From sequence record OP292654.1: a stretch of DNA of 64,000 nt. One strand, 5' to 3'. Both the position numbers and the translations under genes were made by a program. Below, piece after piece: positions 3,393 through 31,648 of this stretch. Every line of letters starts with the position of its first letter. Position 1 is the first letter of the stretch. Below the pieces are notes generated by a model that was not told where the DNA came from, did not search any database, and saw only the letters and a list, made by a program, of their open reading frames with translations.

Positions 3393-3514
3393 GAGAAAGT
3401 AGCTCAGTTGGTAGAGCAGGTAGAAACCCAAAATTACAGTACTGTAATTTCGCAGCAACCATACTTCATCCACTTTTAATGGCCTGGTCGTTGGTTCGAG
3501 TCCAACCTTTCTCG
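3393..3514 (+). tRNA. trnK: tRNA-Lys(TTT) interrupted by a 49-nt insertion (3421-3469)
   Basis: removing 3421-3469 gives a perfect cloverleaf: GAGAAAG/CTTTCTC, GGCCA-CT TTT AA-TGGCC, GTTGG-TTCGAGT-CCAAC. Confidence 0.85.
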
Positions 3515-13277: not shown

Positions 13278-13351
13278 ATAGTAGTAAGTCAATTGGTAAC
13301 GACTCCCTATTAAGATTAGGAGAATGTGTGGTTCAAATCCCTCCTACTATT
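13278..13351 (+). pseudogene. degenerate tRNA-like gene, anticodon AAG
   Basis: ATAGTAG/CTACTAT acceptor, AGTC/GACT D-arm, CCTA-TT AAG AT-TAGG; T-stem largely mispaired. Confidence 0.6.
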
Positions 13352-15553: not shown

Positions 15554-15634
15554 GAGTATATAGCTTAATTATAGAGCAGCGATTTTAACAGGTAATGCTG
15601 GTCGTCAGTGTAGGTGGAACCCCTATTATACTCA
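15554..15634 (+). pseudogene. tRNA-like element with expanded (17-nt) anticodon loop and altered T-loop
   Basis: GAGTATA/TATACTC acceptor, GCTT/GAGC D-arm, GCGAT/GTCGT stem, GTAGG-TGGAACC-CCTAT. Confidence 0.6.
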
Positions 15635-19743: not shown

Positions 19744-19998
19744 CTAGAAGATTGAAAAGTACGACTTACGGCTGGCTGCTGCCAGGGGTCAACACGATTG
19801 ACCATCTTCACGAAATTACGTATCGTCTAACGTTTAATCTTGCGTATTGTCCAAAGAAGGGATATAATGGATTAGATAGGATTCTGGTTCGCCCACGAGG
19901 GGTTCTGGGGATACAGGTGAAAATCCTGTTGCGTATGCCAAAAATTTGTAGTACAATGAATGTAACAAAGAAACTCAATAAACCAAAGAGGTAACACC

Positions 19999-28629: not shown

Positions 28630-28782
28630 TAAGATGCTCTACATCGAGGGGAAATATCCCCTCCTTTTAAGTGAGAAGAATTATGTCCTGGGGTGAAGAA
28701 TTAGTACTGATGATATTGATTATCATCCTGTTAGTTGTATCGCCTGAGATGCACATTCTGTAAAAAAAGATTCAAAAAGTCC

Positions 28783-28810
28783 TTGACACCATAAAGTGGT
28801 GTGATATACT
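28783..28810 (+). promoter_or_regulatory. sigma70-type promoter
   Basis: TTGACA-N16-TATACT with TG extension. Confidence 0.7.
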
Positions 28811-28898
28811 GGACACCTCAAGACAGGAAGCACACTCGCACTGTCTGGTACTGAAAAGTACTTAAGGGTGAAAAGTTGAAAGAAATAGAAAAAAGTAC

Positions 28899-28927
28899 TT
28901 GACAGCCGATTCGCTAGATAGTATTAT
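28899..28927 (+). promoter_or_regulatory. sigma70-type promoter
   Basis: TTGACA-N17-TATTAT. Confidence 0.75.
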
Positions 28928-28933
28928 GAAGAC

Positions 28934-30172
28934 TCTGAAGTGAACGTGAAAACGACGATAACTGACAAAGAGGATTGAACGCAGATGTAACAGATAATCT
29001 AAAACCAAACATTGATCTTAGAAAACTCTTGAATTTGCGGCTCTAAATGAGCAAAAGTCGCAGTACTACAGCGTGTAGACTGCCGTGTAGAACCCTAGCG
29101 GGAGCAGCGTCGCCCCGCGAACCGGAACTATAGGAGATCGCCATCATGAAGTAATTAACGTTTCATCCAAACTTACTTATAAATGATGCGAGTTCTTGTC
29201 TAACAGAGGTACGTTAAGCAAATACGTATGGCTCATAATGTAGAAAGAACTGACATATTGCGAATGAACTTGGGATACTATGAGATCCAAGGTGGAGATG
29301 AAGTTGGGATATTCCCGATAGAGAATCTGTGAAGCCTGTTCATGTCTGACTTCGCCCTTGAATAGTAAGGGCAACCAAATTTCGAGAATGGGATAATATT
29401 TCCGGTATAAAGAGGATAACTGTTTATAGCGTCGATACCTGAACTCGAATATACAATTCCCCGACAGATCCGTTCGGGGAATTGCGAAGAAGTAGTAAAC
29501 CCCGATGTAGCATACTGCCTGGATTGATTCCTGCCAGATAGCACTTTGGGAGATTGCGGGTAGTGTACGCCTTGTCCGATACCGCTTTGTGGGCTTAGTG
29601 CCAATTGATGGGTCGGAAGGGGTTTGCCAGTCGCATAGTATATGAGTAGAAACACGACTAACTGACCATAGTTAGATGAAGTCAACAGAGGACTTTCCCT
29701 AATCGTCTGATAGGGTACGGTGATAGACCATGCCGTGAGTGTTTCAGCATACATTATCAGTATAGCGTAGATACTGACCTCTTTCGAGAGTGCTTGATTA
29801 GCGATGTATGTCCGGTCTTTCCGAACAAAGACCAAACCAGGATTGAAGTACTACGAAGTTGTGTGCTATAATCTGTTCGGAGAGGACTAGCACATAGCGA
29901 TTCACAAACCATCGTCGAGCTTTGACATTCGCTTAGTGCTTGTGTTATTGTAAGACAGGTGGATAGTGAGCAAAATGAGTTGTCACTGCGATGTGTTCCA
30001 TAAGTCACATCTGGCCTTGACAACCAGGGAACAGCCGACTATACTGTAAAGCATAGATTCCCCGCTACCTGTGAGATGGTCTGCCCTCGTGCGGTAAAGG
30101 TGTTTCGGAGGGAGAGGTAGAAGCGAGTATCTACCATAACCCAACCCCGCCGGAGAAATCCGGCAACTTTTA
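28934..30172 (+). ncRNA. candidate giant structured ncRNA (about 1.2 kb)
   Basis: no plus-strand ORF >=60 aa; tandem promoters upstream; many hairpins; GCCGGA-GAAA-TCCGGC + T-rich end. Confidence 0.6.
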
Positions 30173-30200
30173 ATTGAACTTCATTAAGTAAGGTGTTATC

Positions 30201-30422
30201 ATGAGCAATCAAATTAAAACTCGTCTGGTTAATCTGATTAAAGTAACTGCTGCTGAGCAGTGTTTAGGTCAGCGTGATCTAGCACGTAAATTCGATCTTC
30301 ATCAGGCACGTGTTTCAAATCTGTTGGATGAACGTCTGTATATGTTCACCGTAGATGAACTGCTGAAGTGCGTAGAAGCCCTGGGCTTCAATGTTGAAAT
30401 CAACGTATCACCAAAGGGGTAA
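30201..30422 (+). CDS. XRE-family helix-turn-helix regulator
   Basis: LGQRDLARKFDLHQARVSNLL...FTVDELLKCVEALG. Confidence 0.8.
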   Translation: MSNQIKTRLVNLIKVTAAEQCLGQRDLARKFDLHQARVSNLLDERLYMFTVDELLKCVEALGFNVEINVSPKG

Positions 30423-30593
30423 TACCATGAAAGAATACATCGTTGAATACTTCCAGAAAGGTAGCTCCGTTCCTCTCAGTACTCGTCAGGGTGCTCGTTC
30501 ACCGGAAGAAGCACGTACCGCTGCGAAGCGTGAGAAAGGGAATGATATTATCATTCGTACCACTCGCGAAGCATAACAAATATTAAGAAAGAT

Positions 30594-30620
30594 AAAGGCC
30601 ATCAATTGATGGCCTTTTTT
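30594..30620 (+). terminator. intrinsic terminator
   Basis: AAAGGCCATC-AATT-GATGGCCTTTTTT. Confidence 0.85.
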
Positions 30621-30652: not shown

Positions 30653-31648
30653 ATGGAGATTGCTGTGGGTCCGAAAAAACTAAACTTAGAAGAAATCCAA
30701 GATGAAGTACTGAATGAGTGCTTCGAAGATGAAAACAATGATCTTTTGGAATTGTCTGAAGATGACGATGAAGAAGGTTCAGATGATTCAGTTCCTGAAG
30801 GTGGTCTAACTCTGGATAAACTCAAAGCGGCGGTTAAATCGGAACAATATATCAGCAACGAAGAACTAGTAAAAATGGTTCAAGACGGTGTAAACGTTGA
30901 AGAAGCTAAAAACAAAATCATTCTGTTTAATAGCGGATTAGTTTACAACGAAGCGAAGAACTGTACCTGTAACATTCCTTTCCAGGATAAAGTGCAATAT
31001 GGGTTCGAAGGATTGATGAAAGCGATCTACGGATATAACGGTCAGTTCACTACACGTTTCAGTACTTACGCTACTACTACTATTCGTCAGCATATGTACC
31101 GTAATGGTAATAATGAAGTTCGTATGGTTGCGTTGCCTGAACATCTGTCACGTGATAACATTCGCATCCAAGCGTTCATTGAGCGTTACACGACTGAAAA
31201 TACTGGCTATCCAACGAATGAGCAAATCGCGGCGGGAACAGGCATTGACATTCGGGCAGTAAAGCGTATAATGAACTATAACGCCAACACATTCAGTATC
31301 GACACTCCGATGAATCGTGGTGAAGAAGGTTCAGAACAAACACTGAAAGATGTGATTACGTCTGATACCGCTGATTATGTAGTGGATGAACGTGTCATGA
31401 ACAAAGACTTCCTTACTGTGATGGATGAAATCATGGATCAGTTGGAAGAACATGAACGTGTGTTACTTGGTTTATGTCACGGTTTAGATGGTTACAAGAT
31501 GCATACCTTTGATGAAATTATTTCATCCGGTTATATTGACGGTAAAGGTAAGTTCGTAACTTCTAAAGCAACTCTATCTCGTCGTTACAATGATATGATG
31601 GACAAAGTACGTCGCATCGTTGAACGTAACAATATCAACTTTGATTAA
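30653..31648 (+). CDS. sigma70-family RNA polymerase sigma factor
   Basis: region 2 (GFEGLMKAI..RFSTYATTTIRQ), region 3 (VALPEHL, PTNEQIA, SIDTPM), region 4 (LEEHERVLLGLCHGLD..TFDEI). Confidence 0.88.
   Translation: MEIAVGPKKLNLEEIQDEVLNECFEDENNDLLELSEDDDEEGSDDSVPEGGLTLDKLKAAVKSEQYISNEELVKMVQDGVNVEEAKNKIILFNSGLVYNEAKNCTCNIPFQDKVQYGFEGLMKAIYGYNGQFTTRFSTYATTTIRQHMYRNGNNEVRMVALPEHLSRDNIRIQAFIERYTTENTGYPTNEQIAAGTGIDIRAVKRIMNYNANTFSIDTPMNRGEEGSEQTLKDVITSDTADYVVDERVMNKDFLTVMDEIMDQLEEHERVLLGLCHGLDGYKMHTFDEIISSGYIDGKGKFVTSKATLSRRYNDMMDKVRRIVERNNINFD

Follow-up and report, generated by a model that had tools for sequence, protein, structure and literature searches.

The Locus

Xanthomonas phage XbC2 (OP292654.1) is a 367,901-bp jumbo phage of the genus Mimasvirus, and we describe here a gap in its gene map that appears to specify a large structured non-coding RNA (ncRNA). 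Positions are those of the window, meaning the whole stretch of 64,000 nucleotides (nt) that was analyzed, of which 28630-30200 is 100% identical to positions 332531-334101 of the XbC2 record. The gap, which lies between XbC2_535 (end 28629) and XbC2_536 (start 30201), is unannotated in that record and has no conserved open reading frame (ORF) in the midst of a long series of small plus-strand genes. The corresponding gene run of the related phage CBB has been described as the early host-takeover region, with RpoD-like promoters that carry UP-like elements (PMC5259590). In our best explanation, positions 28932-30172 on the plus strand would encode a member of an uncatalogued family of large modular structured ncRNAs, and we regard it as close to certain that the RNA is real, structured and functional and that its family is missing from Rfam. 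The first-pass annotation of the window had proposed a large structured RNA, possibly new, beside a helix-turn-helix (HTH) regulator and a sigma factor, and comparative evidence now supports each part of that proposal.

The unit is preceded by a terminator-like hairpin that closes XbC2_535 (28646-28663, plus strand), found in a scan and kept in the alignments with the phages Kaldavass and GAP32, which by its sequence would isolate the RNA from transcription upstream. Two plus-strand promoters lead in, at the places (28783 and 28899) where sigma70 promoters had been noticed before, and each matches the consensus at 11 of 12 positions. P1 (28762-28810, hexamers 28783-28810) has an A-rich UP-like tract and TTGACA-16-TATACT with a TG ahead of the -10, and both of its hexamers are invariant across seven phages. 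P2 (28878-28927, hexamers 28899-28927), an A-rich tract followed by TTGACA-17-TATTAT, lies 116 bp after P1 (repeat D1, spacing 116) and has a predicted start at ~28932-28934. At the other end, the GNRA-capped GC hairpin and T-run noticed earlier were recovered by the scan as a plus-strand terminator (30149-30172): the hairpin, GCCGGA-GAAA-TCCGGC at 30149-30164, continues in the DNA as AACTTTTAAT, so that the RNA would end in GCCGGA-GAAA-UCCGGC, a 3-nt spacer and UUUUAAUU. This terminator is present in every homologue, with a stem that differs in sequence and a tail of spacer and UUUUAAUU that is common to all. The terminator scan found no plus-strand terminator inside the unit. Overall, plus-strand promoter-like sites number 11 in 2.3 kb, compared with 4.4 ± 2.3 in shuffles, and terminator-like sites in the region number five, compared with 1.6 ± 1.3. 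The G+C content is 0.43-0.47 in the RNA region and 0.35-0.41 in most intervals nearby.

Downstream on the same strand lie the genes for the HTH_37 DNA-binding protein XbC2_536 (30201-30422; PF13744, E 8.9e-16), for a protein of 49 amino acids (aa) (30427-30576; phrog_36312, function unassigned) and for the phage sigma-70-family factor XbC2_538 (30653-31648), with a strong bidirectional terminator from the scan at the junction of the last two (30594-30617). The 49-aa gene, placed between the HTH and sigma genes, is kept in every phage that carries the 5′ block of the RNA. Its product has a confident AlphaFold model (predicted local distance difference test score 91.9) with a beta-beta-alpha-beta fold. 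Among the Foldseek neighbors of this model is T7 Gp2 bound to Escherichia coli RNA polymerase (template modeling score 0.77/0.75, root-mean-square deviation 1.8, E 0.47), together with archaeal ribosomal protein LX and phage neck proteins; no neighbor is significant. A tRNA cluster (24 Rfam hits, 21 by ARAGORN) lies upstream, and because its last gene ends at 19744, ~9 kb before the RNA, the RNA is near the cluster and not adjacent to it. Three of the Rfam tRNA hits have no ARAGORN call (3393-3514, 46.1 bits; 13278-13351, 33.6 bits; 15554-15634, 40.8 bits), and the first of these, at 122 nt, may represent a tRNA-like element or else a tRNA interrupted by an insertion or intron.

Conservation and Modular Variation

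The blastn comparison with related phages that the first-pass annotation had proposed found the region in 14 phage records, that of XbC2 among them, and the alignments contain compensatory changes. Nucleotide identity is 89% in the Erwinia phage Kaldavass, 77% over 60% of the query in the Cronobacter phage GAP32 and 73-74% in the Serratia phage BF and six Erwinia pEa_SNUABM phages, and the Pectobacterium phage CBB is a further member. Exact-pattern and sigma-factor-guided scans added the Yersinia phage fHe-Yen9-04 and the Xanthomonas phage XaC1. Metagenomic members of 349-371 kb (L009, L014, L023, L024, L025, L026, and L031) represent at least six more lineages. At the loci examined, an ORF-poor gap of 1.0-1.5 kb is followed by a small gene (HTH or other), the 49-aa gene and the sigma-70-family gene. 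Measured against GAP32, identity is 77-81% in the RNA, 76% in the sigma gene and 59-65% in the neighboring small genes; the RNA is as conserved as the sigma gene and more conserved than the small genes around it.

The RNA can be divided into a 5′ core with a variable insert (module A), a middle domain, and a 3′ part made up of modules B and C, and its length varies widely among relatives. Measured from the 5′ block to the gene that follows, this length is approximately 1230 nt in XbC2, 1000 nt in GAP32 and CBB, 930 nt in the Eneladusvirus BF group, 730 nt in L031, 645 nt in Yen9-04, 545 nt in L023 and 385 nt in L026, and XaC1 retains the 5′ block only. Module B is confined to the Mimasvirus/Eneladusvirus group and L031, and module C is missing from GAP32, Yen9-04, L023 and L031. 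Searches with nhmmer profiles of the four modules and with two covariance models found no module B at the sigma-factor loci of 121Q, Munch, XaC1, L026, L023 and L036. By the same searches, XaC1 and L026 have just the 5′ core in common with the RNA, and the loci of 121Q, Munch and L036 show no similarity to it. The best reading is a modular family of ~0.3-1.2 kb that spans Mimasvirus, Eneladusvirus and related jumbo phages.

The gene that follows the RNA is also variable. In BF-type Erwinia phages a membrane-protein gene (138-155 aa; L005:4016-4483) takes the place of the HTH gene, and in L014 a membrane-protein gene (138-155 aa; minus strand, ORF 1357-1773 of the extracted stretch) stands after the RNA and ahead of the HTH gene. 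Because pEa50 and L014 both have a membrane-protein gene next, the RNA does not appear to depend on which gene follows it. A little past the sigma gene, 121Q (L018:5829-6550), Munch (L016:9035-9609) and fHe-Yen9-04 (L015:6603-7286) have further gaps of 570-720 nt without ORFs; these have no similarity to the RNA and might hold other RNAs.

Absence of Coding Potential

The earlier observation that no plus-strand ORF of at least 60 aa lies between 28629 and 30201 was borne out, the only plus-strand ORFs there being of 30 aa (28671-28763) and 34 aa (29228-29332). The minus strand of the XbC2 region has ORFs of 185, 88 and 65 aa, none of which has a Pfam match, and across 12 homologues the longest ORFs vary in strand, frame, place and length. 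Mismatches are spread evenly by position modulo three in the RNA (67/61/69 against GAP32 and 105/106/120 against pEa50) and likewise in module B (22/18/18), whereas the same comparison gives 58/40/136 for the sigma gene and 15/15/29 for the 49-aa gene. Indels in the RNA are mostly of 1-2 nt and only two of 15 are multiples of three against GAP32, whereas all of those in the flanking genes are. By this pattern of substitutions and indels the region reads as non-coding.

GenBank annotation of the gap is in conflict. Seven hypothetical proteins, mostly on the minus strand, are annotated in Kaldavass, a single one on the plus strand in GAP32 and a single one on the minus strand in BF, whereas the records of XbC2, CBB and pEa50 have none. 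Besides the seven of Kaldavass, the proteins annotated over the RNA are GAP32_487A, BF_0505 and pEaSNUABM49_00542, in differing strands and frames (L002:3042-4516, L003:3432-3599, L006:3501-3869, and L007:3272-3589 in the GenBank records). Discordant annotations of this kind are typical of gene callers that have been made to predict genes within an RNA, and these hypothetical proteins are probably spurious. Two minute, conserved start-stop arrangements were also seen: a Shine-Dalgarno (SD)-like AAGAGGA followed after 11 nt by ATG-TAA (28967-28990, with ATG-TAA at 28985-28990), and AGGAG (29132-29136) followed after 9 nt by ATG-AAG-TAA (29146-29154), which is invariant in seven phages.

A Conserved Fold on the Plus Strand

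The 982-nt core of the RNA (28934-29915) has a minimum free energy (MFE) z-score of -5.1 relative to dinucleotide shuffles, and RNAalifold energies of the alignments are 12 to 23 standard deviations (sd) below those of column-shuffled alignments. G-U pairs outnumber A-C pairs by 75 to 7 in the plus-strand structure, which identifies the plus strand as the RNA strand, and the covariance models score ~110 bits on this strand and ~14 bits on the other; even the divergent L031 still fits both models. All five stems that had been named from the XbC2 sequence are present and all are conserved with compensatory changes. The region thus has what is generically looked for in a structured ncRNA: no conserved frame, compensatory pairing above controls and on a single strand and, at the level of sequence, its own promoter and terminator, conserved among relatives.

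Covariation is strongest in the 3′ domain (~250-290 nt). For module B (29623-29909), RNAalifold on ten sequences gives 73 pairs that are 96.4% paired, 39 of them compensatory; controls in which the partner was slid by 1-3 columns have 4-10 compensatory pairs, and the energy is 22 sd below column shuffles. Its first part (29648-29746) is a multi-way junction with a closing helix GAAACAC/GUGUUUC and four hairpins, in which 16 of 28 pairs are compensatory (97.4% paired; slid controls 1-3; 0 of 500 shuffles as high). The second part (29747-29811) is a helix GCAUACAUU/GAUGUAUGU with three hairpins, one of which has a UUCG loop; seven of nine pairs are compensatory, and the stem at 29758-29776 has three compensatory pairs.

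The third part (29814-29898, also inverted repeat I12) comprises two hairpins with kissing loops, 29814-29833 with five compensatory pairs and 29858-29898 with four, and an invariant unpaired UUGAAGUACUACGAAGUU at 29843-29860. Across 29813-29901, 21 pairs are 100% paired and 12 are compensatory (slid controls 1-3; 0 of 500 shuffles as high); pair-counting here and in the multi-way junction used model-based alignments that include the divergent L031. Loop CCGAAC (29821-29826) is complementary to loop GUUCGG (29875-29880), giving a 6-bp kissing interaction, and both loops are invariant except in Yen9-04, where they change jointly to CCAAAC/GUUUGG. With this contact included as a pseudoknot, the third part has 27 pairs in ten sequences, 100% paired and 11 compensatory, and no shuffle of 500 was as high in compensatory pairs and covariation score. 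The hairpin at 29858-29898 also holds an invariant UGCUAUAAU (29864-29872) that matches an extended -10, with UUGAAG 18 nt upstream; this may reflect coincidence, mimicry of a promoter or a DNA promoter embedded in the RNA gene.

Module C (29979-30094) consists of hairpins at 29979-30024, 29990-30011 and 30027-30062 and a helix at 30069-30094, and has the promoter-like site P3 (30017-30045, 11 of 12 consensus matches) inside its helices. Across 29896-30175 it has 37 pairs, eight of them compensatory, such as those that turn GGGAA/UUCCC into GAGCA/UGCUC in pEa50. The hexamers of P3 are conserved in Mimasvirus members and lost in pEa50, where the helix is retained.

The 5′ core is the most widely shared part. 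It would open with a short helix between CUCU (28933-28936) and AGAG (28969-28972) around a variable hairpin (4 bp, 97% paired, no compensatory pair), which is also found in the MFE fold. The most conserved block, GAGGATTGAACGCAGATGTAACAG (28970-28993; alignments and pattern scans), follows. It is identical in all lineages but two, apart from A/G at one position; XaC1 has one further substitution and L031 a variant. This region includes the SD-like AAGAGGA and the ATG-TAA described above. A plausible helix P_a (28981-29261) joins GCAG-A-UGU (28981-28988) to ACAUAUUGC (29253-29261) by 7 bp that are 98% paired and change only between G-U and A-U; being nearly invariant, it has weak covariation and is unproven. 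P_a encloses a 264-nt insert domain in XbC2, and L026 has both strands ~28 nt apart, as would be expected for a helix that hosts a variable insert. This insert domain (28992-29252) contains a hairpin at 29060-29083, helices at 29191-29196/29246-29251 and 29210-29235, and the invariant AGGAG.

Helix P_b (29264-29343) pairs AUGAAC (29264-29269) with GUUCAU (29338-29343) and is supported by compensatory changes of independent origin, one to AAGAAC/GUUCUU (CBB and L024) and one to GUGAGC/GCUCAU (L031). It contains a hairpin at 29273-29288, in which four of four pairs are compensatory, and a conserved AGGUGGAGAU. An alifold pairing of AUGAA (29298-29302) with UUCAU was dropped in favor of P_b, which alone explains the changes in CBB and L031. 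Module A also has a 14-nt direct repeat, ATGAACTTGGGATA (29264-29277) and ATGAAGTTGGGATA (29298-29311), 34 nt apart. Either copy could pair with GUUCAU (29338-29343), a hint that the RNA may adopt alternative conformations in Mimasvirus members. In the alifold structure, module A, which is harder to align than the other modules, has 62 pairs of which 16 are compensatory. After an invariant GUCUGACUUC comes the hairpin GCCCUUG/UAAGGGC (29354-29372), with two compensatory pairs.

The middle domain (29381-29635) is of Mimasvirus type only and is reduced or absent in CBB, Eneladusvirus, L023 and L031. It includes helices at 29381-29449, a hairpin at 29454-29484 (9 bp in the consensus, with compensatory changes) and a long hairpin at 29555-29635, and XbC2 alone has a 52-nt insertion at 29501-29552. 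In six Mimasvirus-type sequences it has 70 pairs across 29348-29663, 98% paired, with ten compensatory. Two long-range pairings were rejected: that of the 5′ block with 30004-30013 (inverted repeat I14), whose 3′ partner lacks conservation and covaries with a local partner instead, and that of 29121-29131 with 29396-29406 (I8), which is not supported in CBB.

Relation to Known RNA Families

Rfam 15 at the gathering threshold gave only tRNAs across the whole window. Between 28600 and 30300 at E values up to 10, the only matches were at chance level (SNORD38, E 8; sroH, E 0.89), and seven homologous loci searched at E up to 5 gave nothing consistent. The comparison with GOLLD, ROOL, OLE and group I/II introns suggested by the first-pass annotation therefore matched no family; its statements that the element could not be assigned to GOLLD or ROOL and had no group II domain V agree with the lack of a GOLLD or ROOL match even at E up to 10 and of any intron covariance-model match. 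GOLLD, ROOL, OLE, group I/II introns, RNase P, transfer-messenger RNA (tmRNA), 6S RNA and T-box are excluded as families. An intron was also rejected on the grounds that the flanks are complete separate genes in all relatives. ARAGORN found no tRNA- or tmRNA-like match in the region. The stretch 29996-30110 weakly resembles the model of the E. coli small RNA sroH, which includes no structure (14.9 bits, E 0.89); in 5,426 E. coli genomes searched by blastn there was nothing similar to the RNA, and so the resemblance is probably chance. A 20-nt core of the 5′ block, searched in 185,579 bacterial and archaeal genomes (one per prokaryotic species), gave one match, inside a Kordiimonas coding gene, which we attribute to chance. 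A search of the window for trans targets of the invariant AGTACTACGAAGTT found nothing beyond chance on the complementary strand, and direct repeats that would suggest an array or iterons were not found. We found no description of the RNA in the literature, nor a transcriptome of these phages, although pieces of it may be among the 10,006 unnamed candidates of PMC10690425.

The closest comparison is with GOLLD (RF01998) and ROOL (RF03087), large (0.5-0.8 kb) multi-domain RNAs of unassigned function that are often phage-borne and sometimes near tRNA genes. They too are modular, with variable and conserved halves and covariation support, and cryo-electron microscopy shows that they form RNA-only assemblies (PMC12286853). 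The likeness is shown for size and phage origin only: there is no sequence or structure match at any threshold tried, the hosts differ (jumbo phages of Enterobacterales and Xanthomonas), the RNA reaches 1.24 kb, and it occupies a fixed site upstream of a regulator/sigma-factor cluster with the nearest tRNA gene 9 kb off. OLE RNA (RF01071) and other large bacterial ncRNAs share with it a long, ornate form and many conserved unpaired nucleotides. OLE is a chromosomal RNA of Bacillota that acts with dedicated partner proteins, whereas the phage RNA has no match to its model and no dedicated partner gene was recognized at the phage locus.

Resemblances of a more local kind concern the 5′ end. As in lambda nut, HK022 put and the boxA of rRNA leaders, a conserved block lies 40-60 nt past strong promoters and upstream of terminators and regulatory genes, and the 116-bp spacing of the tandem promoters is much like the arrangement of rrn P1-P2. 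However, the 5′ block fails the boxA consensus by eye, and put and nut elements are <100 nt. The SD-like motifs with ATG-TAA and ATG-AAG-TAA recall lambda bar minigenes, start-stop ORFs and the SP82 5′ polypurine stabilizer, and a ribosome held near the 5′ end could stabilize an RNA. Unlike in those systems, the SD-to-ATG spacer is invariant, a predicted pairing with the 5′ end would occupy the SD-like AGAG, and L031 alters the first block.

Proposed Function and Competing Explanations

The promoters, fold, strand, terminator and synteny are shown by sequence comparison, and from them a chain of events can be proposed. Host sigma70 RNA polymerase would transcribe the RNA early and strongly from the tandem promoters with their UP-like A-tracts. 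The transcript would fold into the short 5′ helix, the conserved 5′ core (P_a and P_b), lineage-specific inserts and a 3′ domain that covariation resolves into a multi-way junction, a three-hairpin domain and a loop-loop kissing contact. Most transcripts would end at the conserved, sub-optimal terminator to give a discrete RNA, and a read-through fraction would carry the HTH and 49-aa genes; because the U-run of the terminator is set back three nt, some polymerases probably read into these genes. The RNA itself would then most likely work in trans during host takeover, serving some protein partner as a folded scaffold or decoy. The neighborhood of an HTH_37 protein, a sigma factor and the 49-aa protein suggests that it serves the takeover of host transcription, and makes the transcription machinery the leading candidate partner. 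We rate a discrete, mainly trans-acting RNA, with the whole of this chain, as moderately probable. A trans-acting scaffold or decoy is conjectured to be more likely than an antisense regulator or a mere leader; it is preferred over a leader because of the size and tertiary complexity of the RNA, its many invariant unpaired nucleotides (for example UUGAAGUACUACGAAGUU), its retention with a replaced downstream gene (pEa50 and L014) and its universal terminator.

Several points weigh against this account. Only 10-12 lineages are represented, several of them closely related, and shuffle tests overstate significance for related sequences; the helices of modules A and C have few compensatory changes behind them. 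Where the transcript starts and stops, and how abundant and stable it is, are predictions from sequence, and the partner and activity of the RNA are conjecture. Promoter-like sites occur within the unit at 29843-29872, 29922-29951 and 30017-30045, and shorter RNAs may therefore be made; two of the internal promoter-like sites are embedded in covarying helices. Finally, no consensus promoter separates the RNA from the gene that follows it in GAP32, L023, L031 and Yen9-04, and in these phages the RNA may double as a leader, a role that may coexist with one in trans.

The alternative that fares best, while still unlikely in our judgment, is that the RNA acts in cis on the HTH and 49-aa (perhaps also the sigma) genes, as a giant leader or attenuator that would control passage of the terminator at 30149-30172 or shield the transcript from Rho and RNases. 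The RNA always precedes the regulator cluster on its own strand, and this holds also for XaC1 and L026, which have the 5′ core only; the 3-nt spacer before the U-run makes the terminator probably leaky; and the promoter-less junctions of the four phages just named would fit. Against this, a length of 0.7-1.2 kb with multi-way junctions and a kissing loop far exceeds any bacterial leader that we know of. The RNA is also retained where a membrane-protein gene comes next, and in Mimasvirus the near-consensus P3 lies in the 3′ module of the RNA and could serve the downstream genes itself. An alternative pairing of UCGGA (30105-30109) could compete for the 3′ arm of the terminator, as an attenuator would need, but it is broken in CBB and L024.

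A cluster of separate smaller RNAs, made from P1/P2, from the extended -10 site at 29843-29872 and, as a ~120-nt RNA, from P3 to the terminator, would account for the five plus-strand promoter-like sites (at least 10 of 12 matches) in 1.4 kb, for the independent gain and loss of modules among lineages and for the conserved P3 hexamers of Mimasvirus members. We consider it improbable, as no terminator separates the modules, P_a spans 264 nt and P_b 68 nt, and P3 and the extended -10 lie within covarying helices, of which pEa50 keeps the one at P3 while losing the hexamers.

About equally improbable is a 6S-like promoter-mimic decoy, itself a version of the trans-acting reading, that would bind the host sigma70 holoenzyme and so leave transcription to the phage sigma factor, whose gene lies 0.5 kb downstream. 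Like 6S RNA (RF00013), the phage RNA could be abundant and act on this holoenzyme, and it has a -10-like motif in a loop and an adjoining sigma gene: the invariant UGCUAUAAU, 18 nt after UUGAAG, lies in an internal loop where part of it is unpaired, and L031 retains the pattern as UUGAUU ... UGUUAUCAU. Clustering with an HTH regulator and a sigma-70-family factor would also suit a decoy, as would the predicted fold of the 49-aa protein, which bears a non-significant resemblance to the T7 RNA-polymerase inhibitor Gp2. However, there is no match to the Rfam 6S model, the RNA is approximately six times longer, and its consensus folds are branched multi-hairpin domains in place of a long rod with a central bubble. 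The motif may just be a DNA promoter or a chance resemblance, and the Gp2 likeness (E = 0.47) concerns a very small fold.

Two further explanations carry little weight. A transcription-primed replication origin, at which the promoters make an R-loop or pre-primer RNA, would also have tandem strong promoters followed by non-coding DNA, an arrangement comparable to the T7 primary origin and the ColE1 RNA II pre-primer; it is very improbable, as covariation with many G-U pairs indicates selection on an RNA fold and not on DNA, and there are no iterons, no AT-rich unwinding stretch, no GC-skew inflection and a G+C content above that of the flanks. That the region codes after all, for small proteins or as a decayed gene, is hardly credible: the GenBank hypothetical proteins, the 185-aa minus-strand ORF and two conserved SD and ATG motifs that stop after zero or one codon can be cited for it, but long ORFs are already contradicted, those present shift in strand, frame and length among homologues, codon periodicity and Pfam matches are lacking, indels shift the frame, and a decayed gene would not retain compensatory base pairs.

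Significance

Large ornate phage RNAs are a known phenomenon, to which this RNA adds a new family. Very few RNAs of >500 nt with complex conserved folds are known from bacteria or phages, and RNase P, group I/II introns, tmRNA, OLE, GOLLD and ROOL have each revealed new biochemistry or, recently, RNA-only architectures. The family has members in culture that grow on ordinary laboratory hosts (GAP32, CBB, BF, the Erwinia phages, and XbC2), and its natural size variants, from ~0.3 to 1.2 kb, define a minimal core. With these phages and variants, clear promoters and a terminator, and a well-supported 3′ domain with a kissing loop, it is directly testable. It also means that several GenBank records place spurious proteins over an RNA gene. 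In a bolder picture, which we offer tentatively as a possibility, a kilobase-sized ornate RNA would be made at the start of infection and fold, perhaps oligomerizing as ROOL and GOLLD do, into a host-reprogramming RNA or RNA-protein machine. Given the HTH protein, the Gp2-like small protein and the phage sigma factor encoded beside it, the most plausible target of such a machine would be the transcription apparatus of the host.

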